Shown here one piece after another: positions 38,484 to 59,598 of a DNA stretch of 64,000 bases (positions are counted from its first letter, which is position 1; each line of letters opens with the position of its first letter). Below the pieces are notes generated by a model. That model searched no databases. It was given only the letters and a program-made list of their open reading frames with translations, and was not told the origin of the DNA. The position numbers and the translations under genes were made by a program. The stretch spans positions 372,001 to 436,000 of the forward strand of contig NW_003314271.1 in the NCBI RefSeq assembly GCF_000143415.4. Reading direction: 5' to 3'. This DNA is from Selaginella moellendorffii. Taxonomy: Eukaryota; Plantae; Lycopodiophyta.

Positions 38484-39100
38484 ATTTGCTAGGGATGATA
38501 AATGAGATGAAATAACCTATCTAGTGTCAAAGCACTTATCTTAACATTTTCAGAGATTCTAAGTAAAAGCCAGAACTCGCCTTCTTCTTACACTGGAAAA
38601 AAAAATTTAAAAAAATAAAAACGAAGACTATACAATGAGAGCACAATCTGTACACACCTTAATCTGTAAACAAAAGAGACTAATCTAGCAACCAATAAAA
38701 CCTAGACACAGGACTGGCACACCTTTTCCAGGGCGTGGTGAGCAACTGTGAGAGGTGGGTGGGGTTTGCAAGTTAGAGAACTCACCTTGGGCTTGTTCTC
38801 TCTCGCAAAAGGACAGCAACTGCAAACTCTCTGATGGTTCTGGCTGTGAAGGCTGGCTCTGGCTTCAGCTCTACCACTGGATAGCATCCACAAACCCAAA
38901 TGAAGACATTTCAAATTTTCACAGCACACAAAAATCCAGATTGTTGGGGTTGGGGGCCAAATTAGCGGCTGCTGGGCTGACTGTGAACACAGACCTTTGC
39001 AGGAAGAAGCACAATTGCTGCGATTGCCACTGATCCGGCAAGCAAGCGTTCCAGCAAGCAAGCGTTAGCTCAATTGCGGCAGGGCATCCAGGGCGAGCTA

Positions 39101-39830
39101 AGAAGAACGGGCACGGGGGCAGGACACCACTGGCACACGTGTCGCTGTGCCTTCTTCTCCCGCCCCACGCGGCTTGGCCGCCTCCCATTGGTCCCTGAAT
39201 TCCCTCGCTCTCGCCTTTCGAGCTTTGTCGCTAAAGATCCTCGCAATGGCCTCAGCAATCTCCTCCCGCTTCACAAACACGTCGGAGCTCCTCCCGTCCG
39301 AAACTTCCACCCCGATGCGGCACCTCTCCGCCATGATCTTGCGGTTGAGCCCCTCCTCGTATATCCGAGGCCAGCAGATGATCGGCACGCCGCTGGAGAC
39401 GCTCTCCAGGACCGAGTTCCATCCGCAGTGGCTCACGAATCCAGCCACTGCCCTGTGCGCCAGAACTTCTCTCTGCGGCGCCCATGAAACCACCAGGTCT
39501 CGTCCCTTGGTCCGCTCGACGAAGTTCTTGTAGAAGTCACTGTTCTTCACCAGGACTGTCGTGTCGCCCTCGTCCACGAACTGGGGCGGCCTGACTGTGA
39601 GCAAGAACGGCACCTTGCTCGCCTCCAAACCGAGCGCGAGCTCCTCGAATTCCTCCTGCGAAAGCTTCGCTATGCTGCTGCCGAATGCGACATAGAGGAC
39701 TGAGTCTGGCTCCTGGGTGTCGAGCCAGTCGAGGCATTCAGAAGAACGGGCACGGGGGCAGGACACCACTGGCACACGTGTCGCTGTGCCTTCTTCTCCC
39801 GCCCCATGCGGCTTGGCCGCCTCCCATTGG
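39101..39830. repeat. Pair of 91-bp direct repeats (39101-39191, 39740-39830) flanking the UGT fragment
   Basis: 'agaagaacgggcacgggggcaggacaccactgg...cctcccattgg' occurs twice with one substitution. Confidence 0.9.
39192..39739 (-). pseudogene. Family-1 UDP-glycosyltransferase C-terminal fragment
   Basis: 'ECLDWLDTQEPDSVLYVAFGS' and PSPG box 'WAPQREVLAHRAVAGFVSHCGWNSVLES...WPRIYEE'. The N-terminal acceptor domain is absent. Confidence 0.9.
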
Positions 39831-42800
39831 CCGGGAGCAAACATCAGAAAAATTTCTCGCGCAACCATGGCTACCGACCCTGGCCCGGGCCTGGGATCCA
39901 ACGGCCGGCGAGCCTCCCCACTATCGCTTTATATGTATAGATATATATATATATTAATTGAGTTTGTATAGAAGTTTATGCAGAATAGAAATGCAGACTA
40001 CAGTTGGGATATATATAAATTTCACAACTATGTAATGATCTGAAAGGAAAATACTAGACTTTTGCAAAGCACACTCAAGAACAACAAAATAACTCCAATG
40101 TTGTGTTTACCAATCTCTGGCAGCTCTCCAAGATTTACAATGTATAGTCTGGACTTTGGATGGGGGAAACCAGCCGCTGTTTGACACGCTACGAAGCTGT
40201 GGAACGGCTTCTACTTCTACGACCCGTCACCGAGAGGTGGGAAAGCCATTGAAGTCACGGTGTTCCTTCCTCCTGAAACAATGGCGAAGTTCAGTGAGAA
40301 AGTCAAAACGAATTAATCCTGTGTACCACCTTACGTGTTAATATCCAGAGTCTATCGTCTCGTCTGCTTGTGTGACATGACTTGACTCCAATCAATCCGT
40401 GCGTGCTGTTTAGAATATAATATCCCCGAGCCTCTAGGAGTCCCTGTGCTGCTTTGCTTGTCACTGCGAGTTCGGGCTTGGATCTTCGACGGGGTGAAGA
40501 TGAAAATGGACAACTTTTAAGTGAAAATCACCGAGGTACATCTTCTCTCGCCTGCAAATCCCACTGAGAGGTGTCAGCTCCCCTTCACAACATTCGCTCT
40601 AATGTAAAAGAGGGACTCCATGCCATTCCTTCAAAGAGTAGCGTTCTATGAATCCACTGGTAAAGACGCAGATCTCCAACAGGGATCATACCGAACGCTG
40701 CCGCAAATGGGAGGATTTCCTCACACCAGAATGGCCGCCATTCAAGAACACGTCTGGATGGAAGCTCGACGAAATATTTCGACTTCTTGGTGATTGGGAG
40801 CGGTGTTGCTGGCCTTCGGTATACGCAACGTTGCCAGGTTGCGTCCGGTGGGGCGTCTTCTCCGACCTCATGAGCTCGGCTTGGCACAGGGCCTGGTAAG
40901 CCAGCATCTCCTGCTTCGCCTAGGCCTCGTTGATCCTACCATTACTCTCGCCCCTGTTACTTACCACGCACAGGCTCTCACGGGAATGCCCACACAACCG
41001 TGTCCGACCAGAGTAGCCATGGAGCCCTAGGAGTGCATGGCATCTTGTCACCACGCCCTCTTCCCTTCCCGGCCACGCGTGCATCCCGCCCATTGGCCGC
41101 CACAACATTGAGCCGATATTCCCGCTAACCATGGCCACCGGTCCTGGCCCGAGCCTGGGCTGGCCTCCCCTTGCCGAGAACCATGGCTTCCGAGGCTGCC
41201 CCGGGCCTGGGATCGGACGGCTGCGGGGGTGTGGGTTCTTCGTTCTTATTATTATAGATATTACTCAAAGCCAAGAAAAAAAAGGAGAAAGCTTCCATGT
41301 TTGCTTTTCTTTCTTTTCCTATTTTGTTTCAGTTTTTTTTTTTTTTCCAGCTTGAGTTGCTGCAGGAGCTGGTGTGCGAGTGATCAAATGCCAGGTTCGC
41401 TCGATTTTAAAAACTCCACTCTTCTGTTTTGATGCTTATCTCCAACTCTTGTCTCGAGTGACAAAACAGATGTTCTTGAGAGGCACCACCACGCAGATCA
41501 TGAACGCTATCCAAAGCTTTACTTGTAGATAGTTTCATACCATTTGCTTGTCGATAGTTTCCAAGTTCCACGCAAAAGATCCAGGCAAGTTTTCATTTTT
41601 GTTCGTTTTGCTCTCTTTTTCTTCTTGAATGTTTTTTTCTTTTTTTAAACGTTTTTTCATCTTGAGTTGCTGCAGGAAGGAGCCCGTCTACGAGTGGCAT
41701 CAAATGCGAGGTTCGGAAAGCCTTCTTCAAACTCTTCACTCTTATCTGATGAAGCCGGTTGGACACATGCAAAGGAAGCATGGCTTGGACACCCCCAAAT
41801 CAAGCTATCGGTTTCAACTCCCTTTCCGGATGAGAGCATTTACTTGTTTTCCATGCGGCTGTACAACGGTATGCTCGAAAGCTGGTCGGGAATTCTGGGC
41901 AATGCCAACTTATTTTTGTTGGGCTTGTGTAAAGAGACCAGGAAAATTTGCGTATCGTATCTTATGAAGGACCAGCACTCTCCCGTCTGTAAACGTTGGA
42001 GATTTGGCAATCTTAGCTCACAAGTCAAAAGAAGTGAGGAAACGAAAATGCTAGACGTTATTTCGTGGACTTTCTGCCAAAAGAATCGACATCCAGGAAC
42101 AACACAGGCTCTAATATTTCTTAATTGTGTTTTCGCAACACAACACCAGTAGCAAAGTTTTAAGCTTGGAAGATGAACTGGCGCCTCAAAGACTTCAATA
42201 CGGACGCGTCGCCCGCCACCATTGCTCCGTCACAGTTCGACTGCTGTAAAAATTTTCTTTTTCAGCTGCAGTCACTGCAAAAGCCAACAATAATGCTGAT
42301 TGTCACAATGTCAAAAAGTTGCAGTGTACGTAATGAAGCGGATAGCAAGACTTCCCATATCTCGCATATCTCTTCCATATATTTCATATCTTTTCATATC
42401 TCGAATGTTGAAAGTCACCATCAGCAACTTTGGCCAGTGTGCAGGCTAGAAGCCGAAGACATCCCACATGCTATTCAGATGCCCACCCAGCCCACAGCTG
42501 GACTTCCACACACACAACACAGCCAGCTAAGGCCAGGCTATACAGGCTTTAGAGGAACGACTTCACTTATCTGCAAAAGCAATTGCATGGCACCGGTCCC
42601 ATGACTGCTGCCGTGATTATAAAAACATCTATCTATCTATCTCGCTTTGTGGTAGAAATTCCATTTCGAGCATTTTCGTTTTATCGTTCTTAAAGTTCAA
42701 AATGATCATTACGCTACGAAAGAACGGAACCTGAATGCGACGGAACAATAAATGAAGGGAAGTGGCGTCGGTCACTCTCCCTCCAAATCTTAGATTTGTT

Positions 42801-43109: not shown

Positions 43110-43260
43110 CAAAATACACGAATATTTTGAATATATTCAACGTAACCTTCAAATATTTTTTATCTGGAAAGAATACCTTGGCACTTGACGGAAACGAATA
43201 TTTTGAATATAACCTTCAAGAATACCTTGGCACGTGATGGAACAATAAACTAAGTCCAGA
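43110..43260 (+). promoter_or_regulatory. Internally repeated GGPPS-like promoter with G-box CACGTG (43231)
   Basis: Repeated 'gaatattttgaatat...ccttcaa...aataccttggcac' units. Copy 2 has two G-boxes (52557, 52634). Confidence 0.4.
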
Positions 43261-43314
43261 CTTGTGTTGGCACGAAAGGTCACAGCATCAAAGCTAAGCA
43301 GGAAAGTTTCAAGC

Positions 43315-44304
43315 ATGAACCAGCAGATCAATGGCCTCGTCCTCCCTCCGAGAATCCACTACCGCCGCGTCGCCGCCAGCGCCGCCCCCGGCACCACCAC
43401 CACCACCAAGTCCAGCAAGTTCGACTACGATCTCTATGTCAAGACCAAGCGCGAGGCCGTGTCCATCTCCCTCCACCGCGCTTTCCCCCCGCCGCTCAAG
43501 CAGCCCGAGACGCTCAAGATGCACGACGCAATGCGCTACGCGGTGGGCGGCGGGCGGCGGACGTGCCCCATCGCTTGCATCGCAGCGTGCGAGCTGGTGG
43601 GCGGCACCCAGGACGACGCCATGCCGGGAGCCTGCGCGCTTGAGATGATCAAGGCCAGCTTCTGCGTCCAGGACGATCTCCCGTCCATTGACGACTCGGA
43701 GCTCCGCCACGGCAAGCCCACCGTCCACCGCGCGTTTGGCATACCCACGGCGCTCTTCGCGGGAACCGCGCTGCTCGCGCTCGGCTTCGAGCACCTGGCG
43801 GCGCGCTACAGCGGCGATACGGCGGCGAGGATGGTGGCGGAGGTGGGCCGGGCTATCGGGTCAACGGGTCTGCTGGCCGGTCAAGCCGTGGACCTGGGCA
43901 TCGAGAACCCGGACCGCGGGGTAGAGCTGGAGACGCTCGAGTTCGTCCACCTCCACAAGACGTCGGCGCTGCTCGAGGCGTCGTTGGTGGCCGGGGCCAT
44001 TGCTGGTGGCGCGAGCGAGCAGGAGATTGAGGCGCTGAGAGCGTATGGACGGGTGACCGGGCTTCTCTACCAGATCGTGGATGATGTCGCGGACGCTACC
44101 AAGACAATGGAGGAGCTCGGGAAGATCCCGGGCCAGGACGCGATGGCGGGCAAGAGCACGTATTCCACCATCTTGGGAGTGGACAAGTCGAGGGAGATGG
44201 TTGGGCAGCTGTTGGTGGAGGCCAAGGAACGATTGGGTGTGTTCGAGGAGACCAAGGCACTGCCGCTGATCCACCTAGCCGATCACTTTGCTAATTGGGC
44301 TTGA
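43315..44304 (+). CDS. Intronless GGPP-synthase-like trans-prenyltransferase with atypical active site
   Basis: FARM 'DDLPSIDD', SARM 'YQIVDDVAD', 'GQAVDL', 'HLHKT', CxxxC 'CIAAC', 'GKSTY'. Short Ala/Thr/Ser-rich N-terminal extension. Confidence 0.9.
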   Translation: MNQQINGLVLPPRIHYRRVAASAAPGTTTTTKSSKFDYDLYVKTKREAVSISLHRAFPPPLKQPETLKMHDAMRYAVGGGRRTCPIACIAACELVGGTQDDAMPGACALEMIKASFCVQDDLPSIDDSELRHGKPTVHRAFGIPTALFAGTALLALGFEHLAARYSGDTAARMVAEVGRAIGSTGLLAGQAVDLGIENPDRGVELETLEFVHLHKTSALLEASLVAGAIAGGASEQEIEALRAYGRVTGLLYQIVDDVADATKTMEELGKIPGQDAMAGKSTYSTILGVDKSREMVGQLLVEAKERLGVFEETKALPLIHLADHFANWA

Positions 44305-44395
44305 GACTTTAGTTTGGTATAATGACTATTGTTGTTTCTTATTATTATTATTATTATGAGTTTAACACAACAATAATAGAATCAACTGGAAATAA

Positions 44396-46439
44396 TTATT
44401 TGAAGCTCAGAAGTTGTGTGGCTTTTTTCTGGATAGTCTCCCAAGCCTTAATAACATGCTTAACCTCAGTTAAAGTACCTCCAACGGCCATTCGCAACAA
44501 AAAATCCCCCGAGAGCACCTGTTTTTCAGGTGTTTGGGTCATTACATGGTGGCATGATGCATTTAGAAACTTACTGTATGTGTGATGAATGTTGTTTCGT
44601 TTGAATTCACTGCGTGAAGTAAATTTTCATTGAGAGCATTTACGGAACTGGCCTCAATTGCTTTGAGCCTGAAGCAAACAAGTCCAAATCTGCAAGGCAC
44701 TAAAACCTGCAATACAAACTTCTTTGCTATACTGAATTCAAATTTAAGAAGTTGAATTTCACGAACCTCGAAACGTTTGTCTTCAGTGACTTTTCTCTCG
44801 AAAAGCCTAGCTAGGCAAGTATGATGTATGATATAGTTTTTAAGTTTGGAGGAGCCATAAAGTCGCATGACAAGCCACAACTTCAGAGCTCTAGAAAGAA
44901 ACAGACCATGATATGTGCCAACAATTAAAACATAAACAAAGCAACAACCTGAATCTTTTTCCGAGTGATACTTGCCAGTCCTTGAAATCCACGACTTCCC
45001 CCGCCTCAGATGCCTGTACTAAATAAACAAAATGATAATTAATTAATTACTCCACACCTTGTTACGAAGATATTCTGACTGGACCGAAAGCGTTGAAGTC
45101 AAGGTCCTTGCATTCTTTAATATAACACAAGTAAGAAGTGGGAATAACTTAGCAACAATACCTTAACCCATAATACAGAGCAATCTAGATTTGTCAAGAG
45201 CCATTTGTGAGTTCCAACATTGAGTGAATCAGCCTTCTCGATGCCATCCAAGAAATGCCTATACTCGGGGCATATGCACGCACTGCCTCCGTATGCGGCA
45301 TCTACGTGAAACCACATTTCATATTCCTGGCAAATGGATCGATTATCAAAGCAAGCAACAAGCAAACAAAGTTGGAAATGCCAGATTACCTGAGCAATTT
45401 CACCAAGGTCTAGCAATGGATCTACAGCGGCGGAAGACGTGGTACCAAGCTGCAATAAGAGCGTTATGTAAGGATGCAGAAGACCCACGTATCACAGTAC
45501 CGTGGCACCCAGATACAGTGGTATGACATCGTCCCCGCCTTCCTCAATAGCTCCACGCAAGAGAGCAGGCGAGAGCGCGTAGTTTGTTTCCTTGGTTGTG
45601 GGCAGCACCACCAGCTTGATGCCCGCAATCTTACAGGCCTTGTGCAAGCACATGTGAGTCTGATCCGACGTGTACGCTCGGAGTCTGCGCACCACGTCTT
45701 CCTCTACAAGCCCATTTGGCGTGTGCTTCGAAATGGCTCGACTCCGGGCGGCACACAGTGTGACGAGCATTCCCTCGGTCGCTGAGCCTTGGATGACGCC
45801 CCCGCCTTTGCCTAGAGAGTAAAACAAGCAATACGTAAGGCGAGACGTGGCAGTGTGTGATAGACCTGATGATCCCGAGAGGAAGGAGTCTGGCAGCTCG
45901 AGAAGCTTTCCCAACCAGTTTACGACAATAATCTCCAGCTCCGTGGCCGCGGGTGAGGCGATCCAGCTGAAGTTGACGGTATTGAAGCCGGAGATGAGGA
46001 TCTCGGCTAGAATGCCGGCGGTGCTACTGTTTGCCGGATAGTAGCTGAAGAAGCTCGGGCTCTGCCAGTGCGTGAGGCCGGGAATGATGATGTTGCTCAC
46101 ATCTAAACAGCCACATTGCCAGATTTCATGAGAGATTCGATGATATAGACGGGAGTACCAACCAGCAAGAATGTCATCGAAGGACTCTGGATCTTGAGGT
46201 GCAAATGCGGGGATTAAATCATTCAAGTATCCTGGCTGCACACAGTAGTACAAGTGAGTAGTGACGAGGGAGGAGGAACAGGAGAGAAACGTGAAACATA
46301 CACTAACTTGGCTTCTGACCGGAAACTTCTCAATGTGGCGATAGTAGTCGGCCACAAAATCCACCATTCGGTGGGCATGCTCCCGAAACTCCTCAGAGTC
46401 CATCAACTTGAGGCCGGGTGGTGGTGCCGATTCGCCCAT
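44396..46439 (-). CDS. Divergent aromatic amino acid decarboxylase AADC2a (appears intact)
   Basis: '[20 protein letters not shown]', 'SPAATELE', 'HVDAAYGG', '[17 protein letters not shown]', 'VQSEYLRNK', '[14 protein letters not shown]'. Stop TAA at 44396-98. Confidence 0.92.
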
Positions 46440-46598
46440 CTCTGAGCTCTCGGGCTATGGCTCCTCAATCAATAATCTTCCTCCCACGTTTTCTATCTGG
46501 ATCGTATGTTTAGTAAGAGAGTTTCTTTAATCTTTGGCAAGTTTCTTTTACTACCTAGGTATATTTCTAAATTCTATCAAGTCTTGGTGAGAGTGGCA
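46440..46598. promoter_or_regulatory. 159-bp putative bidirectional promoter between AADC2 and methyltransferase A (copy at 55871-56029)
   Basis: Divergent ATGs at 46439(-) and 46599(+). Confidence 0.6.
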
Positions 46599-47807
46599 AT
46601 GGCTGTGGACAACCAGGAGCTTGAAGTGTTTTACGATGAAGGATGTGTGGTGTATGAAGCAGTGTGGGGTGAGCATATGCATTCGGGTTACTTCGATGCT
46701 GGCAACACTCGCGACTTTCGAGCGGCACAAATCCGAATGCTCGAGGAGCTCTTGGCCTGGGCAGGAGTACCGGGTAAGCATTTCAATCGCTCCGAGACAC
46801 ACCCTTTTACAATGTGTGCATCTAGACGACGAGCAAAGCCGGCCAAGGAACATTCTGGATGTGGGCTGTGGATTTGGAGGAACATCTCGGTATCTATCCA
46901 ATAAGTACTCCGCGAATGTCACAGGAATAGCATTGAGTAAGTACGAGATTGGCAGAGCTAGAGCCATTGCAAAGGCAGAGGGTGTTTGTGACAAGGTATT
47001 GCTCTACCATCGCACAAATCAAAAGCATCTTCTTGGTTCATTCAGGTGGCATTTCAAGTGGCAGATGCTTTGAGTCTGCCCTTCGAAGACAACCAGTATG
47101 ATCTGGTTTGGTGCATGGAGTGTGCCGATCATATTGCAGATAAACTCAAGGTAAAACACTCTCATAGAGTTTGAGCTTCATATGTTACTATTTCTTCGTC
47201 TGAGCAGCTAATGCAAGAGATGACGCGTGTGGCCAAGCCCGGAGGCTGGGTTGTGCTCACAGGATGGTGTCACCGAGAGTTTACCCATGGCGAAACTTCA
47301 CTCAAGAAGCATGAGCTGGTCATAGATTTAATCAAGACTGAAAACGTGAGTTAAATTATATTTTAATATATGTGATTTGTGTTTGCAGAAGATCCTGGAC
47401 AAAGTCCGTGCAGCATATCTTCTTCCACCTTGGTGCCAGACATCTGATTACAAAGTTATAGCAATCGACGCGGGTTTGCAAGTGTGTGCTGTAATCTCAA
47501 TATAATATTTAGAGTTTACTGTGATTAATGTTGCCAGGGGGTAAAAGTGGAAGACTGGACACGGCACATGCTTCCGTTTTGGGGTCTGCTCACTGCAGAG
47601 ATCTTTACCTTGAGAGGCGCATTCAAGATTTTGACATCAGGTAATACAAAACTTTCACAAGAGTCTTACCTCTCTAATGAGTAAACAGGATGGGCACATC
47701 TTCGTGCAAGTATATCCTTGGCATATCACTTCTCCTACATGGACAAAGGATTCAAGACTGGCGTTTTCAAGTATGCTGTGGTTATGGGAAAGAAAGATAA
47801 GAAGTAG
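46599..47807 (+). CDS. gamma-tocopherol-methyltransferase-like SAM methyltransferase, type A copy 1 (7 exons, no transit peptide)
   Basis: 'FYDEGCVVYEAVWGEHMHSGYF', 'ILDVGCGFGGTSRYL', 'FQVADALSLPFEDNQYDLVWCME', 'RVAKPGG..WCHR', 'LPPWC', 'EDWT..MLPFW'. Ends GKKDKK*. Confidence 0.9.
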
Positions 47808-47937
47808 TTCCAGTAGCAGGAGACTTGCCTCCTTTATTATCTGTTTTGATTCATAAAGGTCGAACAATTGACACAGCAAATCATCAATAATAATTCATTA
47901 TTTCTTACACTGGATCGCCAGCGTCTTTGTTCTTGCA

Positions 47938-48270
47938 ATGGCCAGCGAGATCGAAGAGATTTATGATGAGGGATGCGTGGTGTACGAGGCCGTGTGGGGC
48001 GAGCATATGCACTCGGGCTACTTTGAGGCGGGCAAGCCTGGGGACTTTCGAGTGGCACAAGTCCGAATGATCGAGGAGGTCCTCTCTTGGGCCGGAGTAC
48101 CAAGTAAGCTTCCCTCTCTATTCTATTACAATCTCCTAGATGATGAGCAAAGCCGGCCTCGAGACATACTGGACGTGGGCTGCGGTTTTGGGGGAACTTC
48201 TCGATATCTGTCCAAGAAGTACTCGGCAAATGTGAAAGGAATAGCACTGAGCGATTACGAGATCGCCAGC
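47938..48270 (+). pseudogene. Truncated type-C methyltransferase (exon 2 joined to 3' flank)
   Basis: Matches the 58387 gene up to 'gagatcgccag', then jumps to sequence resembling 59610 onward. Confidence 0.85.
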
Positions 48271-50064
48271 TCCATTGCTCCTGTTTTTCTTTCTATATAA
48301 AAATATCTTTGTGAAGTCCAAATTTATGAAGGTATGCAGACCTCATTGTGTTTACAATCCACTTGTGCATGGGGCATGGAGCATGGGATCAGTTAACCAA
48401 TTAGTTACTTAACGTTCATCGCCCACCTTCTCTCACTCTTGTGGTCTTATAAAATATATGACAATAATATTTGTAAGTATAGAATACCATATATTGAACA
48501 ATGCTACTCTATCGCATTATATACAATTGTTGAAATTCATTTCTAAATCTTTTAGTCGGTATCCCAAAACCGTGTAAACAATGAATGAATATACTGGGTC
48601 TTGCAGCTTCCAGCTGGAGCTGGGTTGGTATTCGTAATTTGTATGAAAGGGAATGGGGCACCATACCTAATCTGCATTCAGTGTATATTAGATTTTAACT
48701 TTGAAAATGGTGCTAGATATCTTTATTTTTATTGAAGAAAGTCTTATATTTATTTATTCATATTCAAGTTGGTTCATGAGATGCTCGTGGGACACAAGTG
48801 TATATTGTCAATTGTCATTGGGGAAGGAGGGACAGAGTGCCTGGAGGAGCAGGCCCTGTCGCCCCTGGCTCCCATGAGGTCCGGGAGGTTGTGTGCGTTG
48901 AAAACGAGCAGGGTGCTTGGCAGTCGTAGACGACGTGTCTTTACGTCTGCTTTGCATCTCGCGGGGTGACTGGTGTATGTCGTCGTCCGAGCTCGACGAG
49001 CAACAAGTGACAAGCAATCTCGGACTTTTACATAGTGAATACCATCTAACAAGGAGAAACAGCGGCAAAACTAGGGGCGATGGTAAGATACTTCATGTTT
49101 GACCGAAAGGATTAAAATACATTGGAAACAGACTTATGCAGCGTACAATATCTTTTGAGAATCTCAACCCCACTGACGAGAATCGAGCAATGGTGGCTGA
49201 AAGTACTTCACGTGCTCTTGGGCCTCTTCAAGCTGCTCCGGTTGACAAGAATGGTGGCCTTGTGTGTGTTCTACTGGAGCTCTACGCTTGAATTATCTAC
49301 ATGACTTTGTTTTCGGTGCCCGTCAAGCGTGTGCGAGAACGACTGACGCTGTGGAAGTTAGTGTTTCTGACTTAAAAACATTTTGCCAAAGATTTCTTGA
49401 CAGTGGAGCCCTTTGACAGATTGGTCACAAGCTTTATCAAATTACGATAGAGCCAACACAAATAAAAAAAGTTGTTGTCCAATCACATCCAGTAGTGCCT
49501 GCCATTCCCCATGCCTCCTGCTATGGTGGCTGTGACGGTGATGAACAGCAAACAATCCTCCTAGCCAGCGCAAGCTTGTGGTGTCTCGAGGTGCCCCGTG
49601 AAGCATGTGTGTGACCGATTAACACTCATTCACAAGGGCACGGCACCACAAGATTCAAAACAGCATTAGATAGAGAGAAAAAATTTGCTGGCCAGAGATG
49701 CAAAAGACTCATGAAAGTGGAAAACTTACTGGTGACAAGCTTGATCGACGTAAGATAGAGCCAACACAATTCCAATCGGGCAGGACGTGGAACGTGCGAT
49801 GGATTAGAGAGTGACCTCCTTGTGGTGTTGCGCCAACACAATCAAGACAATTCTCGTCCAGTGCCAATTCACATACCACACGCTTCCTGCGAGCTGTATT
49901 CTTGGTGGCTGTGATGTTGGTGAAGTGGTTACAATCCTCTTTACTAGTCCAAGCTTAAAGTTTGAAATAAAAATGCTGCATTTGTGACAAAAACAATTGT
50001 CATTACTAGCATCCATTAGAAAATATTGATTGTTGAAAATTAAGTTGGAATAAATAATTGTTGT

Positions 50065-50098
50065 GTCAGGATTCGAACCTGCGCAGGCAAGCCCACAT
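50065..50098 (-). other. tRNA-Ser-like 3' half fragment (variable arm plus T arm), not a full tRNA
   Basis: Minus strand reads 'atgtgggcttgcctgcgcaggttcgaatcctg', with B-box GTTCGAATCC and a Ser-type long variable arm. There is no D arm or anticodon. Confidence 0.55.
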
Positions 50099-50119
50099 CC
50101 CCACACTTCGGGTATTCCA

Positions 50120-51085
50120 CCACTTGGGTGGCACACTTGTTCAGAAGTTCAAGCTGGTGATACTTGAAGGGCTCCACTCTGTTGCCTATGAGATGCAAAT
50201 AGAGCTGTAAGTTATGCAGTGCCTGATTCTCAGGTTTGTGCTTCAGATAAGTCAAGCCTGTGTGGACAACTTCCAGCACCACCCCAACGTGAGATACGTA
50301 GCCCAGAGTGCTTCCCGGAAGCTTGGTAACCACATCCAAGGGATTAACCACGGTGAGGACTCGGAGGCTCTGCAACCTTTCTGCCGCCACCTTGAACGCA
50401 TGGTTGCCACCTTGACGACCACCTAGGGCAAGTGCGGTCACCGGGATCAGCTTACCATTGGGACATGTCGTAGGCACACAGGATTGCGAGCGAAGCTCCA
50501 AAACTATGCCCGGCCACAGTGATGCTCAATTTTTCATCAATGAGGCTCCTGAGCGTGGAAACTATCTGATCACGGGCACAGAGGTGTTTCCAAACTCCTC
50601 GCCTGGATAAGAACGAGTGTAAAGTGTGGATACATGGTCGGACACCAATACGGGCGACGAGCTTCCGGCCGCCACTGCTAGTTTCACTGTATTCAGCCGA
50701 GGGAGGGGCAAGAGCGAGTCGATCTCCGACCATTCCCGAGTGAGCTCCATGCCCCGAAACGCAGGGAGGATGTCTCTTCGTCCCAGCCTCAAGCTTTCTT
50801 CATCATGGCCAGGTAGCCAGACCTGGCCATATGATCTGTATCTTTGGTGCTGCCATAGATGTACTTGTGTATCGTGTAGCCGGTGTTGCCCATCTGGAGC
50901 TTGTGGAATAGCTGTGACTTGCCATGAATGCACAGGCCATACCAGCGAGATGCTTGACTTCGTTGAATCCATCCACCACGCATTAGATGTGCTGGCCGTA
51001 GCGGATCAGCTCCTGGCAGAGAGTTTCGTCCATGGGATTCCCAAGCATGCCTTTCCAGAATGTCTGGCTTTGGACTATCCATTTC
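50120..51085 (-). pseudogene. Class-3 lipase pseudogene, inverted paralogue of the 63226 gene
   Basis: 'QTFWKGMLGNPMDETLCQELIRYGQ', 'SITVAGHSFGASLA', 'VVNPLDVVTKLPG', 'HNLQLYLH'. Several frameshifts and deletions. Confidence 0.88.
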
Positions 51086-51377
51086 CCTGTTAGAGATGGT
51101 GCCGAGAAATGAAGAGACAAAGACTTCGAGTATGATAGTACTTTTAGGTTTGCCAAATTGCCATGTCCGTATTCGATCGAAAAGCTGAAGGTATGCCCAC
51201 TGTCAGTGCAGCGGGCGAGAAGCTTTAGTCCATGCTTCCTGCTGGACAAGCTTCTTTTGTTCGTACATCATGGCAGAAAAACTTTTGAAAACGTTTAAAG
51301 AACTTACAGAAATTCGGCAGGTCTAGGCTATTGGGAACAAAAAAGAATAAAGAATAAAAAAACTAAAAGAAAGATCG

Positions 51378-51596
51378 AGCTGCAAAGGCATCCAAGCATC
51401 CAGAGTGCGTTCATGACTTTTTGTCATGGGTCCTTGAGTTTGCATAGGGCAGAAGTTGGTGTGCCAAAGTTGCCATTGCTACTCTCCAACTTTGCATTTA
51501 GTCCTGCTTCGAGTTACAAGCACAGCCCCAGGATGCACGTTATCATCGACGCACCTCGAGGCATCCAGCTGGTTGTCCACAAACTCAGCGAATGAT
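51378..51596 (+). pseudogene. 3'-terminal remnant of the P450 gene, inverted
   Basis: Degenerate match to the last exon of 60833..62568, ending 'SPRMHVIIDAPRGIQLVVHKLSE*'. Confidence 0.88.
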
Positions 51597-52735
51597 AAAA
51601 CACTGCTGGAACGTTCTTGTTTACTCTCGAGAAAGACAATCAATGAGGGAACACATAAACGTACTGCTAGAAGTTAAATGAAGAAATTCGACCAAGCGTG
51701 CGTAAACTGCAGGAGTGACTACAGCTCTCTTAAGATGCTCACAAGGTGTAAATTAGCTATTTCCAGGTTACAGCTCAAAAGGTAGTTTCTCGTATTGACA
51801 TGGCTGCAAGTAATAATTTCTTGTCACACGAGCATCTCATGACCAGCTCTGTTCAAAAGGTTAAATGGTTCGCCAGGGGTAACTTCTGCAGAAAAATCAC
51901 AGTGACGTTTCTCCACAAATGCTTCTACAAATCGTTGTACTTAAATGTCATTTCGAACTTCTTGCCTTCCACCCCAGTGTCGTCATGAGTAGCCCTATCA
52001 CCTTTGTCGCGAGCCTGATACCAGCGTCAATGACTAACACCAACAAGTGACCCGTTTGTGTACCGATAAGCTGAATGTACCATAATCCATGAGATATCCA
52101 ACTATCCTTGAAGAGCTAAACAAATCATAATTAATTAAAACGACATAAAAACATGTTCAGGAAATGGTGGATCAAGGTACTCACATCTGAAGAAACTGTA
52201 TGCATCAGTTTCGAGTAAGCCATGGAGTGCACCCATTAACTATATTACATTTATATATTTACTGTGTATATTTATATATTTACAATATGAAGATGACCGA
52301 TCTGTTCTGTTTAGCTGCAAGAGGAAGAACAACCATGAAAACATACAAAGAAAAAGTTTTCGACTTACATGCCATAGGATTGGAGAGAGCAGCGGGGCGA
52401 TGGGAGCTGGACCAATTCTTGTAACCACAGGTTCTAATATTTCTCAATTGTGTTTGCGCTCTTCTTTCACTCTTAGTACGGGATTGATCAAAATACACGA
52501 ATATTTTGAATCTATTCAACGTAACCTTCAAATATTTTTTATCTGGCATACCTTGGCACGTGATGGAACAATAACTTGACCAAAATACATGAACATTTTG
52601 AATATAACCTTCAAATATTCAAGAATACCTTGGCACGTGATGGAACAATAAACTAAGTCCAGACTTGTCTTGTTTGTGCTGGCACGAAAGGTCAGTCACT
52701 ACTCAGCATCAAAGCTAAGCAGGAACGTTTCAAGC

Positions 52736-53694
52736 ATGAACCAGCAGGTCAATGGCGTCGTCCTCCCTCCGAGGATCCACTACCGCCGCGTTGCCGCTAG
52801 CGCCGCCCCCGGCACCACCACCACCACCAAGCCCAGCAAGTTTGACTACGATCTCTATGTCAAGACCAAGCGCGAGGCCGTGTCCATCTCCCTCCACTCG
52901 GTTTTCTCCCCGCCGCTCAAGCAGCCCGAGACGCTCAAGATGCACGAGGCAGTGCGCTACGCGGTGGGCGGCGGGCGGCGGACGTGCCCCATCGCTTGCA
53001 TCGAGGCGTGCGAGCTGGTGGGAGGCACCTAGGACGACGCCATGCCGGGAGCCTGCGCGCTTGAGATGATCAAGGCCAGCTTCTGCGTCCAGGACGATCT
53101 CCCGTCCATCGACGACTCGGAGCTCCGCCACGGCAAGCCCACCGTCCACCGCGCGTTTGGCATCCCCACGGCGCTCTTTGCGAGCACCGCGCTGCTCGCG
53201 CTCGGCTTCGAGCACCTGGCGGCGCGGGCGAGGATGGTGGCGGAGGTGAGCCGGGCTATCGGGTCAACGGGTCTGCTGGCCGGTCAAGAACCCGGACCGC
53301 GCGGTGGAGCTGGAGACGCTCGGCCTCGAGCAGCGCCGACGTCTTGTGGAGGTGGACGAACCGGGGCCATTGCTGGTGGCGCGAGCGAGCAGGAGATTGA
53401 GGCGCTGAGAGCGTATGGACGGGTGACCGGGCTTCTCTACCAGATCATGGATGATGTCACGGATGCTACCAAGACAATGGAGGAGCTCGGGAAGATCCCG
53501 GCCAGGACGCGATGGCGGGCTTAACGAGGATCCATTGGAGAGCAAGTCTAGCTCCAATAGCGTATATCAAAGCCATCTTGGGCGTGGACAAGTCGAGGGA
53601 GATGGTTGGGCAGCTCTTGGTGGAGGCCAAGGAACGATTGGGTGTGTTCGAGGAGACCAAGGCACTGCCTCTGATCCGCCGATCACTTTGCTAA
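52736..53694 (+). pseudogene. GGPPS-like pseudogene
   Basis: CAG>TAG at 53030-53032, plus internal deletions, frameshifts and a foreign insert near 53520. Confidence 0.92.
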
Positions 53695-53811
53695 TTAGGC
53701 TGTTTTTGGAGACTATATTACTATTGTTGTTGTTGTTGTCGTTATTATTATTATTATTATTATTATTAAGTTTAAGTTTAGCACAACAATAATAAAATCA
53801 ACTGGAAATAA

Positions 53812-55870
53812 TCATTTGGAGCTCAGAAGTAGTGTGGCTTTTTTCTGGATAGTTTCCCAAGCCTTAATAACATGCTTGGCCTCAGTTAAAGTACCTCCAA
53901 CGGCCATTCGCAACAAAAAATCTCCTGAGAGCACCTGTTTTTCAGGTGTTTAGATCATTACATGGTGGCATGATTCATTTAGAAACTTACTGTATGTGTA
54001 ATGAATGTTGTTTCATTTGAATTCACTGCGTGGAGTAAATTTTCATTGAGAGCATTTACAGAACTGGCCTCAATTGCTTTGAGTCTGAAGCAAACAAGTC
54101 CAAATCTGCAAGGCACTAAAACCTGCAATACAAACTATTTTGTTATACTGAATTCAAATTAAAGAAGTTGAATTTCACGAACCTCGAAACGTTTGTCTTC
54201 ACTGACTTTTCTCTCGAAAAGCCTAGCTAGGCAAGCATGGTGTATGATATAGTTTTTAAGTTTGGAGGAGCCATAAAGTCGCATGACAAGCCACAACTTC
54301 AGAGATCTAGAAAAATACAAACCAATTAGATATGTGCCAACAATTAAAACATAAACAAAGCAACAACCTGAATCTTTTGCCAAGTGATACTTGCCAGTCC
54401 TTGAAATCCACCACTTCCCCCGCCTCAGATGCCTGTACTAAATAAACAAAATTACAATTAACTAATATTTACTCCACACCTTGTTACGAAGATATTCTGA
54501 CTGGACCGAAAGCGTTGAAGTCAAGGTTCTTGCATTCTTTAATATAACACAATATACTTTAGTAAGAAGTTGGAATGACTTAGCAACAATACCTTAACCC
54601 ATAATACAGAGCAATCTAGATTTGTCAAGAGCCATTTGTGAGTTCCAACATTGAGTGAATCAGCCTTCTCGATGCCATCCAAGAAATGCCTATACTCGGG
54701 GCATATGCACGCACTGCCTCCGTATGCGGCATCTACGTGAAACCACATTCCATATTCCTGGCAAATGGATCAATTATCAAAGCAAGCAACAAGCAAACAA
54801 AGTTGGAAATGCCAGATTACCTGAGCAATTTCACCAAGGTCTAGCAATGGATCTACAGCGGCGGAAGACGTGGTACCAAGCTGCAATAAGAGCGTTATGT
54901 AAGGATGCAGAAGACCCACGTATCACAGTACCGTGGCACCCAGATACAGTGGTATGACATCGTCCCCGCCTTCCTCAATAGCTCCACGCAAGAGAGCAGG
55001 CGAGAGCGCGTAGTTTGTTTCCTTGGTTGTGGGCAGCACCACCAGCTTGATGCCCGCAATCTTACAGGCCTTGTGCAAGCACATGTGAGTCTGATCCGAC
55101 GTGTACGCTCGGAGTCTGCGCACCACGTCTTCCTCTACAAGCCCATTTGGCGTGTGCTTCGAAATGGCTCGACTCCGGGCGGCACACAGTGTGACGAGCA
55201 TTCCCTCGGTCGCTGAGCCTTGGATGACGCCCCCGCCTTCGCCTAGAGAGTAAAACAAGCAATACGTAAAGCGAGACTTGGCAGTGTGTGATAGACCTGA
55301 TGATCCCGAGAGGAAGGAGTCTGGCAGCTCGAGAAGCTTTCCCAGCCAGTTTACGACAATAATCTCCAGCTCCGTGGCCGCGGGTGAGGCGATCCAGCTG
55401 AAGTTGACGGTATTGAAGCCGGAGATGAGGATCTCGGCTAGAATGCCGGCGGTGCTACTGTTTGCCGGATAGTAGCTGAAGAAGCTCGGGCTCTGCCAGT
55501 GCGTGAGGCCGGGAATGATGATGTTGCTCACATCTAAACAGCCACATTGCCAGATTTCATGAGAGATTCGATGATATAGACGGGAGTACCAACCAGCAAG
55601 AATGTCATCGAAGGACTCTGGATCTTGAGGTGCAAATGCGGGGATTAAATCATTCAAGTATCCTGGCTGCACACAGTAGTACAAGTGAGTAGTGACGAGG
55701 GAGGAGGAACAGGAGAGAAACGTGAAACATACACTAACTTGGCTTCTGACCGGAAACTTCTCAATGTGGCGATAGTAGTCGGCCACAAAATCCACCATTC
55801 GGTGGGCATGCTCCCGAAACTCCTCAGAGTCCATCAACTTGAGGCCGGGTGGTGGTGCCGATTCGCCCAT
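53812..55870 (-). CDS. Divergent aromatic amino acid decarboxylase AADC2b (appears intact)
   Basis: Same exons and motifs as AADC2a. Stop TGA at 53812-14. Confidence 0.9.
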
Positions 55871-56029
55871 CTCTGAGCTCTCGGGCTATGGCTCCTCAAT
55901 CAATAATCTTCCTCCCACGTTTTCTATCTGGATCGTATGTTTAGTAAGAGAGTTTCTTTAATCTTTGGCAAGTTTCTTTTACTACCTAGGTATATTTCTA
56001 AATTCTATCAAGTCTTGGTGAGAGTGGCA

Positions 56030-57238
56030 ATGGCTGTGGACAACCAGGAGCTTGAAGTGTTTTACGATGAAGGATGTGTGGTGTATGAAGCAGTGTGGGG
56101 TGAGCATATGCATTCGGGTTACTTCGATGCTGGCAACACTCGCGACTTTCGAGCGGCACAAATCCGAATGCTCGAGGAGCTCTTGGCCTGGGCAGGAGTA
56201 CCGGGTAAGCATTTCAATCGCTCCGAGACACACCCTTTTACAATGTGTGCATCTAGACGACGAGCAAAGCCGGCCAAGGAACATTCTGGATGTGGGCTGT
56301 GGATTTGGAGGAACATCTCGGTATCTATCCAATAAGTACTCCGCGAATGTCACAGGAATAGCATTGAGTAAGTACGAGATTGGCAGAGCTAGAGCCATTG
56401 CAAAGGCAGAGGGTGTTTGTGACAAGGTATTGCTCTACCATCGCACAAATCAAAAGCATCTTCTTGGTTCATTCAGGTGGCATTTCAAGTGGCAGATGCT
56501 TTGAGTCTGCCCTTCGAAGACAACCAGTATGATCTGGTTTGGTGCATGGAGTGTGCCGATCATATTGCAGATAAACTCAAGGTAAAACACTCTCATAGAG
56601 TTTGAGCTTCATATGTTACTATTTCTTCGTCTGAGCAGCTAATGCAAGAGATGACGCGTGTGGCCAAGCCCGGAGGCTGGGTTGTGCTCACAGGATGGTG
56701 TCACCGAGAGTTTACCCATGGCGAAACTTCACTCAAGAAGCATGAGCTGGTCATAGATTTAATCAAGACTGAAAACGTGAGTTAAATTATATTTTAATAT
56801 ATGTGATTTGTGTTTGCAGAAGATCCTGGACAAAGTCCGTGCAGCATATCTTCTTCCACCTTGGTGCCAGACATCTGATTACAAAGTTATAGCAATCGAC
56901 GCGGGTTTGCAAGTGTGTGCTGTAATCTCAATATAATATTTAGAGTTTACTGTGATTAATGTTGCCAGGGGGTAAAAGTGGAAGACTGGACACGGCACAT
57001 GCTTCCGTTTTGGGGTCTGCTCACTGCAGAGATCTTTACCTTGAGAGGCGCATTCAAGATTTTGACATCAGGTAATACAAAACTTTCACAAGAGTCTTAC
57101 CTCTCTAATGAGTAAACAGGATGGGCACATCTTCGTGCAAGTATATCCTTGGCATATCACTTCTCCTACATGGACAAAGGATTCAAGACTGGCGTTTTCA
57201 AGTATGCTGTGGTTATGGGAAAGAAAGATAAGAAGTAG
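56030..57238 (+). CDS. gamma-TMT-like methyltransferase, type A copy 2
   Basis: No difference from 46599..47807 seen by eye. Confidence 0.88.
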
Positions 57239-57368
57239 TTCCAGTAGCAGGAGACTTGCCTCCTTTATTATCTGTTTTGATTCATAAAGGTCGAACAATT
57301 GACACAGCAAATCATCAATAATAATTCATTATTTCTTACACTGGATCGCCAGCGTCTTTGTTCTTGCA

Positions 57369-58173
57369 ATGGCCAGCGAGATCGAAGAGATTTATGATGA
57401 GGGATGCGTGGTGTACGAGGCCGTGTGGGGCGAGCATATGCACTCGGGCTACTTTGAGGCGGGCAAGCCTGGGGACTTTCGAGTGGCACAAGTCCGAATG
57501 ATCGAGGAGGTCCTCTCTTGGGCCGGAGTACCAAGTAAGCTTCCCTCTCTATTCTATTACAATCTCCTAGATGATGAGCAAAGCCGGCCTCGAGACATAC
57601 TGGACGTGGGCTGCGGTTTTGGGGGAACTTCTCGATATCTGTCCAAGAAGTACTCGGCAAATGTGAAAGGAATAGCACTGAGCGATTACGAGATCGCCAG
57701 CTCCATTGCTCCTGTTTTTCTTTCTATTTTAATATATGTGATTTGTGTTTGCAGAAGATCCTAGACAAAGTCCGTGCAGCATATCTTCTTCCACCTTGGT
57801 GCCAGACATCTGAATACAAAGTTGTAGCAATCGACTCGGGTTTGCAGGTGTGTGTTATAATTTCAATATATTATCTAGAATTTATTGTGATTAATGTTGC
57901 CAGGGGGTAAAAGTGGAAGACTGGACACAGCACATGCTTCCGTTTTGGGGTCTGCTCACTGCAGAAATCTTTACCTTGAGAGGCGCATTCAAGATTTTGA
58001 CATCAGGTAATACAAAACTTTTGCAAGAGTCTTACCTCTCTAATGAGTAAACAGGATGGGCACATCTTCGTGCAAGTATATCCTTGGCATATCACTTCTC
58101 CTACATGGACAAAGGATTCAAGACTGGCATTTTCAAGTATGCTGTGGTCATGGGAAAGAAAGGTAAGAATTAG
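57369..58173 (+). pseudogene. Chimeric methyltransferase: truncated type-C 5' part fused to a diverged type-A 3' half
   Basis: Junction near 57727. Exons 3-4 are missing and the last three exons are A-like, ending GKKGKN*. Confidence 0.8.
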
Positions 58174-58386
58174 TTCCAGTAGCAAGAGACTTGCCTCCTA
58201 ACTCCAAACTTATTCTCTGTTGTGATTCATAAAGGTCGATCACAGGTGACAATTGACAAAGCAATAATTTAATCATCAATAATAATTCATGATTTCTTAC
58301 ACTAGGAAGGAATTTTAGCGTGAGTCCTAGCCGCGGGGGAGGATCTTGCGGCAGTTCCCGTAAGCGCCAGTGTCTGTGTTCTTGCA

Positions 58387-59598
58387 ATGGCCAGCGAGAT
58401 TGAAGAGTTTTATGATGAGGGATGCGTGGTGTACGAGGCCGTGTGGGGCGAGCATATGCACTCGGGCTACTTTGAGGCGGGCAAGCCTGGGGACTTTCGA
58501 GTGGCACAAGTCCGAATGATCGAGGAGGTCCTCTCTTGGGCCGGAGTACCAAGTAAGCTTTTGATCATGGTATCCCTCTCTATTCTATTACAATCTCCTA
58601 GATGATGAGCAAAGCCGGCCTCGAGACATACTGGACGTGGGCTGCGGTTTTGGGGGAACTTCTCGATATCTGTCCAAGAAGTACTCGGCAAATGTGAAAG
58701 GAATAGCACTGAGCGATTACGAGATCGCCAGAGCCAAAGCCATCGCGAGGGCGGAAGGAGTTTCAGACAAGGTAGATTCCACTCCGTTGTTTGGGGCTGT
58801 TTCTAACACTTAACGAACAGGTGACGTTCCAAGTAGCAAATGCACTGAATCAACCGTTCGAAGACGGCCAGTTTGATCTCGTCTGGTGCATGGAATGCGC
58901 AGTGCACATTGAGGACAAACTCAAGGTAGAAGAATTCATAATCTTTTCATCTGGGTTTGTTTAAATCCCGCACGCGATTGCAGCTTGTGCAAGAGATGGC
59001 ACGCGTGACCAAGCCCGGAGGTCGGGTGGTGCTTGTGAGCTGGTGCCACAGAGAACTGAAGCCTGGAGAAACTTCACTCAAGAAGGATGAGCAAGTAAGC
59101 GAAGTTCCTAGATATTTCTTGATCCCTTAAAAAGATTGTCATAACATATGGCTTCAGGCGCTCTTGGATAAGATCTGTGCTGCTTACTTCTTTCCACCCT
59201 GGTGCGCCACTTCAGAGTACGAAACATTAGCATGCAATGCGGGTTTGCAAGTAAGACTTCGGGTTCTTCATCGACTCTATGGCTGATCTTATGTATTATC
59301 TGATCTGTAGGAAGTAAAGGTGGAAGATTGGACTCGACACATGCTTCCATTCTGGGGAATGCTCACGGGCCAGCTCTTTACATTGGGAGGTGCATTCAAG
59401 CTCCTGACATCAGGTAAGTAAAGATCTTGTTACGTGTCGCAGCTTTAGTTTCTCGTTTTTATTTCTTGCTTTCCAGGGTGGGCACATATGCGGACAAGTC
59501 TGTCATTGGCTTACCACTTCTTCTACATGGACAAAGGCTTCAAGAATGGCACCTTCAAGTATGCCGTGGTGGTGGGAAAGAAAGAGCTGTTATCATAA
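58387..59598 (+). CDS. gamma-TMT-like methyltransferase, type C (7 exons, intact, no transit peptide)
   Basis: 'MASEIEEFYDEGCVVYEAVWGEHMHSGYF', 'LDVGCGFGG', 'FQVANALNQPFEDGQFDLVWCME', 'RVTKPGGRVVLVSWCHR', 'LLDKICAAYFFPPWC'. Stop TAA at 59596-98. Confidence 0.9.

Follow-up and report, generated by a model that had tools for sequence, protein, structure and literature searches.

A 64-kb window of Selaginella moellendorffii DNA, which lies on a genomic scaffold also deposited as GenBank GL377575.1 (assembly GCA_000143415.2), carries at positions 46599-59598 two types of methyltransferase gene, here called A and C, that descend from gamma-tocopherol methyltransferase (gamma-TMT; VTE4 in plants). 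Type A stands head to head with an aromatic L-amino-acid decarboxylase (AADC), and A and C are predicted to N-methylate the amines that this decarboxylase supplies, a reading to which a probability of about 0.6 may be given. Its best interpretation is an independent lycophyte variant of the known recruitment of gamma-TMT to alkaloid N-methylation.

Two Intact and Transcribed Types

The original prediction spoke of two distinct gamma-TMT-like types, and both are indeed distinct and intact; to this it can be added that type A is present twice and that the remaining homologous stretches, called type B, are fragments (Table 1). The second A copy lies in a segmental duplication, where 43035-48306 recurs at 52424-57737 with 86% identity in the first 1.1 kb and 97.6% in the other 4.1 kb. 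Type B fragment 2 has no exons 3-4 and is annotated as a 156-aa protein. The spliced models of A and C agree letter for letter with the deposited proteins EFJ30342.1 and XP_024528826.1, and intact frames of these types occur in at least six copies over four scaffolds. A solo type C gene of 287 aa, 97% identical to the cluster copy, is found at 10001-11208 of the extracts from GL377660.1 and GL377571.1; these two scaffolds resemble an allelic pair, and the gene sits there among PPR genes, away from any decarboxylase.

Logan RNA contigs of four runs, each from a different study, were placed on the window at 98% identity or more. In them, the six introns of A and the six of C all appear as GT..AG joints; therefore, both types are transcribed and correctly spliced. 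The introns measure 43-70 nt, a size in keeping with this species. One type A intron uses the weaker GTCATA donor at 47318/47319, after codon Leu186, and not the GTGAGT situated 27 nt downstream; a type A model of 300 aa with this stronger donor conflicts with the joints of every run and is ruled out. Transcripts of the decarboxylase, of A and of C were recovered in each of the four runs, in contigs that carry no expression levels. These contigs have no strand information, and in them the decarboxylase transcript is fused with that of type A, so that they do not place the transcription start of A. The body of type B fragment 2 (57416-57943) is covered by no contig of at least 98% identity in three of the four runs. 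Some contigs join 57342 to 58348 and 58164 to 58304, that is, the 3′ untranslated region (UTR) of A or the end of B fragment 2 to a C-type 5′ region, and these joints hold 26 or 7 differing letters between the joined parts; they fit either the A-then-C order of the second haplotype or read-through over the gaps of about 130-180 nt between the tandem genes. The run X8, whose organism label differs from that of the other runs, matches the decarboxylase, A and C at no less than 98% identity and shows haplotype-2-like changes in the promoter spacer.

Absence of a Transit Peptide

Both types had been described as starting 6-10 residues before an FY(D/N)E motif and hence as lacking a plastid transit peptide. 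The short distance stood, with 10 residues ahead of FYDE in A and 7 in C (the motif begins at residue 11 and residue 8, respectively), while no FYNE variant was seen. In the sampled leader-bearing eukaryotic members of the family, FYD lies some 43-132 residues from the start, and in cyanobacterial members 10-30 residues. An in-frame stop is situated 15-22 codons upstream, with no ATG between it and the start, in C, in both B fragments, in A and C of the second haplotype, and in two solo C loci.

An in-frame upstream ATG exists only in the window's A copies, 31 codons ahead of the conserved start (46506 and 55937), and the RefSeq model XP_002968088.2 (322 aa) begins there. The older GenBank entry EFJ30342.1 has 291 aa, and both the RNA and the other haplotype bear out its start. 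The 31-aa N-terminal extension of the RefSeq model is judged to be spurious because the other haplotype (GL377579.1) has ACG in place of the upstream ATG and then a 17-nt frame-breaking deletion before the conserved start, because RNA run X8 also reads ACG (55938 T>C), because the 93-nt extension has 32% GC versus 54% in exon 1, and because the context of the upstream ATG is poor. The context of the conserved start, (g/a)caATGGc, is common to all A, B and C copies. The public label “probable tocopherol O-methyltransferase, chloroplastic” and the 322-aa model of A are thus probably wrong, and both the name and the spurious N-terminus need correction.

An upstream exon that would supply a transit peptide was also sought in the RNA contigs of the four runs, and none was found: no joint leads into exon 1 of A or C, and beyond both start codons the contigs continue upstream without a break. 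In the AlphaFold model of A, the chain starts immediately at helix 1 of the methyltransferase domain. Taken together, the upstream stops, the non-conserved extension of A and the lack of an upstream exon in the RNA bear out the claim that neither A nor C has the N-terminal plastid transit peptide of VTE4. The loss of this peptide and the neofunctionalisation of the enzymes can be regarded as well supported, and a location outside the plastid is predicted for both types from their N-termini. The cytosol, as first proposed, is a candidate location; one gamma-TMT homologue without a transit peptide, LaTMT2, is Golgi-localised (PMC13310175).

Departure from VTE4 with an Intact Catalytic Core

A and C have 42-47% identity to VTE4 of mosses, gymnosperms and angiosperms and 38-39% to the cyanobacterial enzymes. 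About 280 members of the family were sampled for a motif census, in which those with a readable motif were counted. HMHHG was found in 264 of them and S(M/L)ESGEH in 142, while HMHSG and CMECADH or CMECAVH occur solely in Selaginella proteins. The motif shifts first noticed in the window (HMHHG to HMHSG and SMESGEH to CMECADH/CMECAVH) are therefore real and have no other carrier among the sampled members.

The same tendency is seen along the whole protein. Near-invariant columns were set on 24 canonical enzymes, from cyanobacteria to angiosperms, which gave 83 columns, or 82 without the start Met. Changes in A or C affect 29 of the 83, and in 24 of the 82 (about 30%) all three of the compared sequences, A, A of the second haplotype and C, are changed; the conserved set of family-invariant residues by which VTE4 is recognised is thus not preserved. 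Residues D70, G72, C73, G74, G76 and G77 of the S-adenosylmethionine (SAM) motif, as well as H28, E140 and H144, are unchanged in 41 aligned relatives, distant outgroups included, and of the S-M-E-S-G-E-H motif A and C retain the invariant Glu and His. With these residues and the SAM motif intact, A and C are probably active enzymes with a remodelled acceptor site and not decaying copies. The Tyr of FYDE (or a Trp-to-Tyr change) was considered as an equivalent of PfPMT Tyr19 and dropped, since the local alignment register is off by one.

Both sequence and model point to a class I SAM-dependent methyltransferase fold with a GxGxG motif and an intact catalytic core. Pfam Methyltransf_25/11 and CMAS match exon 2, and the AlphaFold model of A (pLDDT 90.4, pTM 0.89) is that of a complete class I methyltransferase, with TM 0.8-0.9 to AtmM and to sarcosine-dimethylglycine N-methyltransferase (SDMT). 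An NCBIfam scan of the protein stayed below every curated cut-off, and the nearest clusters in the ESM Atlas are cyanobacterial tocopherol methyltransferases.

The ratio of nonsynonymous to synonymous substitution rates (dN/dS) is 0.19 for A versus A of the second haplotype, 0.12 for C versus its second-haplotype counterpart, and 0.10-0.13 between A and C, with a dS of about 1.1-1.4 between the two types. Judged by these values, the types are old and both are maintained under purifying selection. A and C are 76% identical to each other, and 53 positions differ between them and are fixed within each type. It had also been proposed that they differ in substrate-side regions; this is supported near the active site, where the residue directly before the invariant His is Asp in A, Val in C and Glu in VTE4.

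An Independent Offshoot of the Land-Plant Family

By homology and by their placement, A and C belong to the gamma-TMT family. A tree rooted on cyanobacteria places the Selaginella clade within the land-plant gamma-TMTs (98/98), where its position relative to moss VTE4 is unresolved, and outside the seed-plant clade (98/94). Its stem measures 3.47 substitutions per site, compared with 0.2-0.8 on the neighbouring branches. Thus, the departure from VTE4 noted at the outset is confirmed as a strong one, both in the replaced invariant columns and in the length of the stem, and it amounts to descent from gamma-TMT with loss of the tocopherol-type conservation. When distant methyltransferases served as the outgroup, the clade fell outside all gamma-TMTs. 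This placement is judged to be long-branch attraction because identity is highest to land-plant VTE4 and because, without the far outgroup, the clade returns inside the embryophytes (98/98).

The trees included GsNMT (QLI49051.1), a characterised N-methyltransferase of the colchicine pathway (PMC10761944), and two Dioscorea paralogues without a transit peptide. A search with one such Dioscorea paralogue returned mainly VTE4, together with GsNMT, and no Apocynaceae TLMT. In the trees, monocot VTE4 encloses GsNMT and the Dioscorea paralogues. The Selaginella clade stands outside the seed plants and does not share a clade with them; on these trees it is therefore an offshoot independent of GsNMT and of the Dioscorea paralogues. 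At the same time, GsNMT or a Dioscorea paralogue also departs from the invariant residue in 16 of the 24 columns that Selaginella has changed, where chance would give about 8 (hypergeometric P = 1e-4); position 4 of HMHHG and the Ser-Gly of ESGEH are among these common sites. The cause of this parallel evolution may be a new chemistry acquired on both sides or simply the loss of tocopherol binding on both sides. Of the proposed convergence with other N-methyltransferases, the independent origin and the parallel sites hold in comparison with GsNMT and Dioscorea, and the part concerning the Apocynaceae TLMTs is based on the literature.

A word-indexed search of 5.8 billion proteins with type A of the second haplotype as the query returned nothing above 38% identity except S. 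moellendorffii proteins. Likewise, a search with exon 1 in a library of 1.84 billion representatives gave one match at E <= 1e-10, the window's own chimeric B protein, which was also the sole match above 55% identity. Within the reach of these searches, the A/C clade appears to be restricted to S. moellendorffii or its close kin. No canonical S. moellendorffii VTE4 was located, no genome-wide search having been made. A gamma-TMT-like fragment from an unidentified Logan run was considered as a possible Selaginella VTE4 and, having a long intron and this uncertain source, was dropped.

The Decarboxylase and the Putative Gene Cluster

The start codons of AADC2a and type A (46439 and 46599), which lie on divergent strands, are separated by 159 bp, and the same spacing is repeated at 55870 and 56030 for AADC2b and the second A copy. 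In the second haplotype, the annotated gap between the two genes is 142 nt. In three runs, RNA contigs span AADC exon 1, the whole spacer and A exon 1 without a break.

Over the two haplotypes, the decarboxylase and the methyltransferases adjoin a prenyl-diphosphate-synthase-like gene, a cytochrome P450, a lipase and a UDP-glycosyltransferase (UGT). The order in the second haplotype is prenyl-diphosphate-synthase-like gene, decarboxylase (minus strand), type A, type C, P450 (minus strand), lipase and CNMT-like methyltransferase. This simpler order is probably the ancestral one; in the window's haplotype, the first four genes are duplicated, with one copy broken. The CNMT-like gene (PF02353/CMAS, 347 aa) lies about 2.5-3.2 kb beyond the window end and is present in both haplotypes. 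The prenyl-diphosphate-synthase-like (GGPPS-like) gene, which heads each repeat unit, has both Asp-rich motifs, a CxxxC motif and a transit-peptide-like N-terminus rich in Ser, Thr and Arg, and its duplicate at about 52670-53700 is decayed and frameshifted.

The substrate of the decarboxylases can be approached through a residue rule according to which a catalytic-loop Tyr marks true decarboxylases and Gly at position 370 admits indoles in Catharanthus TDC (bioRxiv 10.1101/404970). AADC2 has the catalytic-loop Tyr (SEYLRNK), Leu-Gly at the positions of CrTDC 369/370 and Ala at position 103 (YYPA), so that Gly370 and Ala103 are as in CrTDC. The more divergent AADC1 has Gly at the 370 position and Ser at the 103 position, and the combination of Ser103 with Gly370 may fit 5-hydroxytryptophan (10.1101/404970). 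For the indole substrate, the rule is to be taken as a pointer and not as proof.

It is very probable that this cluster has already been flagged by genome mining. In a 2025 preprint on plantiSMASH 2.0, BGC30 of S. moellendorffii is guessed to make a prenylated indole alkaloid glycoside (bioRxiv 10.1101/2025.10.28.683968), and BGC30 is very probably this locus, as judged by its content and not by coordinates.

Proposed N-Methylation of Decarboxylase-Derived Amines and Its Alternatives

In the best explanation, the land-plant gamma-TMT gave rise to A and C, which lost its plastid transit peptide and acquired a new function within this lineage. In the small putative biosynthetic gene cluster to which they belong, the AADC divergent from type A would be the first committed enzyme, and A and C would perform SAM-dependent N-methylation of the amine it makes, a tryptamine-type amine being favoured. 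Nitrogen as the acceptor atom, like the amine substrate itself, is thus predicted from sequence and context. The product would carry the N,N-dimethyl group of the S. moellendorffii pyrrolidinoindoline alkaloids. These alkaloids are tryptamine-derived, C-3a-prenylated and N,N-dimethylated. The species makes selaginellic acids, in 5-hydroxy and non-hydroxy forms, and 5-hydroxy-N8,N8-dimethylpseudophrynaminol (PMC8156211; PMC5385659).

Several lines favour N-methylation: the linkage of AADC and A, the residues of the decarboxylase, the angiosperm precedent, the parallel sites, the alkaloids of the species and the content of the cluster, in which the prenyl-diphosphate-synthase-like gene, the P450 and the UGT would suit such products. 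The precedent comes from gamma-TMT homologues that N-methylate alkaloids in Apocynaceae (Cr2270 and others), Amaryllidaceae (LaTMT2) and Colchicaceae (GsNMT) (PMC13310175; PMC10761944). Further details are more tentative. A division of the first and second methylation between A and C is an attractive idea and at present a rather doubtful one. It is similarly no better than possible that the locus, through a lycophyte-specific recruitment of VTE4, is the cluster for the selaginellic-acid and N8,N8-dimethylpseudophrynaminol alkaloids. In such a pathway, the decarboxylase would form tryptamine, or 5-hydroxytryptamine through AADC1, A and C would perform two distinct N-methylations, one of them possibly quaternising, and the P450 would oxidise the prenyl side chain; a decarboxylase, two N-methylations, prenylation and P450 oxidation match what the cluster contains. 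Should C-3a-prenylated indoles be the product, it is not evident which enzyme would prenylate them, the GGPPS-like gene being the only prenyl-related gene present. Neither of the two consulted papers that mention selaginellic acid connects it with genes.

Several observations weigh against N-methylation by A and C. Homology does not fix the methyl acceptor atom because the fold subfamily holds O-, N- and C-methyltransferases, and the CNMT-like gene some 2.5 kb past the window end in both haplotypes could itself be an amine N-methyltransferase. The near-identical solo type C gene stands among PPR genes, apart from any decarboxylase. The Gly370 rule was derived from the angiosperm TDC/TyDC clades, and a lycophyte enzyme in which Leu369 is retained may not follow it; the overlap of changed sites with GsNMT and Dioscorea may come from nothing but a shared loss of tocopherol binding. 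Finally, A and C could in principle be the only gamma-TMT homologues of S. moellendorffii.

In one alternative, A and C would act in the cluster pathway on oxygen or carbon (e.g., a 5-hydroxyl, a carboxyl, or an indole or prenyl carbon), with the CNMT-like neighbour as the N-methylating enzyme. The closest solved folds include O-methyltransferases (AtmM, RebM) as well as C-methyltransferases (TleD, GPP-MT), the ancestral gamma-TMT is itself a C-methyltransferase, and the plantiSMASH label for the methyltransferases of the cluster is “O-methyl transferases”. The CNMT-family gene flanks the cluster in both haplotypes; however, it is type A and not this gene that has its promoter in common with the decarboxylase. 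In the cited literature, every characterised plant gamma-TMT offshoot is an N-methyltransferase, the parallel substitutions are common to A, C and those enzymes, and the alkaloids named in the cited papers carry two N-methyls, all of which makes O- or C-methylation an unlikely alternative, if one to be taken seriously. It is distinctly unlikely that the substrates are phenolic amines, with tyramine converted to N-methyltyramine and hordenine and the product then glycosylated by the nearby UGT. Two methylation steps would suit two enzyme types, a UGT is indeed present in the window, and the Gly370 rule may fail for lycophyte decarboxylases that keep Leu369; nevertheless, both decarboxylases have Gly, and not Ser, where PsTyDC favours phenolics, and neither the prenyl-diphosphate-synthase-like gene nor the P450 would have a role in hordenine formation. 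Glycosides of hordenine and N-methyltyramine are known from S. doederleinii (PMC3650682), and hordenine is reported from S. repanda (PMC8156211); for S. moellendorffii, the cited papers list indole-derived alkaloids and none of the hordenine type.

A retained tocopherol function would demand that A and C still C-methylate tocopherol or another prenylquinol, either after import without a classical transit peptide or outside the plastid, and that the neighbourhood of the AADC is coincidental. The RefSeq name suggests this function, A and C branch where a lycophyte VTE4 is expected, their catalytic Glu, His and SAM motifs are intact, and no other gamma-TMT homologue of S. moellendorffii was found, a result obtained without a genome-wide search. 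Against this, A and C have exchanged about 30% of the residues that do not vary between cyanobacteria and angiosperms, both signature motifs included, the stem branch is four to fifteen times as long as its neighbours, the transit peptide is missing, two old types plus extra copies are kept side by side, and the head-to-head arrangement with AADC is conserved in both haplotypes. Such a function is consequently held to be highly improbable. Hardly credible at all is the view that A and C are decaying or functionless duplicates that differ from VTE4 through relaxed constraint. It could appeal to the very long branch, to the two broken B copies in the array and to the decayed prenyl-synthase-like duplicate, but it conflicts with dN/dS values of 0.10-0.19 within and between types at a dS of up to 1.4, with the number of intact frames on four scaffolds, with spliced RNA in four studies, and with the invariant catalytic core and the confidently predicted fold.

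If N-methylation by A and C is true, VTE4 was recruited for alkaloid N-methylation in a lycophyte independently of angiosperms, with changes at many of the same invariant residues, and the two lineages form a natural experiment on the residues that switch a tocopherol C-methyltransferase to an amine N-methyltransferase. The genes would then be candidates for the N,N-dimethyl pyrrolidinoindoline alkaloids of S. moellendorffii, and the locus would be a compact cluster of a non-seed plant with a bidirectional promoter, among the few alkaloid gene clusters outside seed plants.

Comparison with Known Enzymes and Clusters

VTE4 (EC 2.1.1.95) of plants and cyanobacteria resembles A and C in family, fold, SAM motif, invariant Glu and His and placement in the embryophytes, and exon 1 of A and C ends at the same point as that of the unidentified gamma-TMT-like fragment mentioned above. 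It differs in that A and C have no transit peptide, bear HMHSG and CMECA(D/V)H, have 24-29 of about 82 invariant residues replaced, lie on a very long branch, are multi-copy and are clustered with a decarboxylase.

Catharanthus Cr2270 and the other Apocynaceae TLMTs, Leucojum LaTMT2, the Narcissus TMT and Gloriosa GsNMT, presumably like A and C, are offshoots of gamma-TMT that entered specialised metabolism and are associated with alkaloid pathways. LaTMT2 also has no predicted plastid transit peptide (PMC13310175), and the changed sites of the angiosperm N-methyltransferases overlap those of A and C, e.g., in HMHHG (fourth residue) and ESGEH (Ser-Gly). In contrast, GsNMT keeps a 36-aa N-terminal extension, and GsNMT and the Dioscorea proteins arose inside monocot VTE4, while A and C arose outside the seed plants. 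Moreover, the Selaginella genes are found in a physical cluster with a shared promoter, and the function of A and C is predicted from sequence.

The closest solved structures are RebM/AtmM, MitM, sarcosine-dimethylglycine N-methyltransferase, TleD, GPP C-methyltransferases and phosphoethanolamine N-methyltransferases (3BUS, E = 2.7e-28; 6UV6 and 2O57, TM 0.81-0.90 versus the model of A). The RebM/AtmM-type structures have the N-terminal helix, the WG-x-H-x-H-x-G motif and the E...H motif in common with A and C; however, identity is only 19-25%, and their acceptors are sugars, aziridine, glycine derivatives and phosphobases, so that they do not inform on the substrate of A and C. As for plantiSMASH BGC30, it is treated in one sentence, in which the methyltransferases are called O-methyltransferases, and the paper has neither the gamma-TMT origin, the missing transit peptide and the two types nor the link to selaginellic acids.

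Features of the Window

The coordinates of the genes and fragments are collected in Table 1.

Table 1. Features of the 64-kb window and its flank (window positions unless stated otherwise).
Feature	Position	Strand	Remarks
Type A methyltransferase, copy 1	46599..47807	+	gamma-TMT-like; 291 aa; seven exons; spliced model identical to EFJ30342.1
Type A copy 1, exons	46599-46773, 46826-46995, 47046-47150, 47208-47318, 47389-47481, 47538-47640, 47689-47807	+	introns RNA-confirmed on the identical copy 2
Type A, copy 2	56030..57238	+	seven exons; 100% exon identity to copy 1; offset +9431; RNA joints
Type A copy 2, RNA joints	56203/56256, 56424/56475, 56579/56637, 56748/56819, 56912/56969, 57068/57117	+	RNA contigs
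Upstream ATG and 31 codons used by RefSeq	46506..46598; second copy 55937-56029	+	judged non-coding
Type C methyltransferase	58387..59598	+	gamma-TMT-like; 289 aa; seven exons; spliced model identical to XP_024528826.1; six introns in RNA
Type C, exons	58387-58552, 58602-58771, 58821-58925, 58984-59094, 59158-59250, 59311-59413, 59477-59598	+	
Type B fragment 1	47938..48269	+	pseudogene: C-like exon 1 and partial exon 2, then C 3′-flank-like sequence
Type B fragment 2	57369..58173	+	chimera: C-like exon 1 and partial exon 2 joined to A-like exons 5-7
AADC/type A spacer	46440..46598; second copy 55871-56029	.	159 bp start to start; bidirectional promoter and 5′ UTR region
AADC2a	44396..46439	-	aromatic L-amino-acid decarboxylase; no N-terminal extension; PF00282
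AADC2b	53812..55870	-	duplicate of AADC2a; annotated 517 aa
AADC1	17500..19900	-	second, more divergent decarboxylase; YYPS (Ser at 103 position)
GGPPS-like	43264..44304	+	polyprenyl-diphosphate-synthase-like; intronless; 346 aa; PF00348, E = 1.4e-41
Cytochrome P450	60833..62568	-	504 aa; convergent with type C; PF00067
Class-3 lipase	49804..52223	-	between the two repeat units; PF01764
Second lipase gene	starts 63226		runs off the window
UDP-glycosyltransferase	39098..39901	-	open reading frame; PF00201
CNMT-like gene	~19000-19830 in the window-haplotype extract; 20507-21209 in the second-haplotype (GL377579.1) extract		beyond the window end

Besides these, two intact minus-strand open reading frames of 1003 aa and 406 aa, the latter Pif1-helicase-like, occupy an island of 33-36% GC at 34101-38483, which resembles a Helitron-type transposon whose insertion has separated the UGT from the remaining window. 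Upstream of the cluster there are intronless minus-strand open reading frames at 29147-30715 (522 aa, with a weak FAD_binding_8 match) and at 31478-32956 (492 aa, with no Pfam match). Finally, direct repeats of 377 bp at 25729-26105 and 27722-28098, which are 98.7% identical, flank gag/protease-like open reading frames, and the stretch 25729-28098 looks like a small long terminal repeat (LTR) retroelement.

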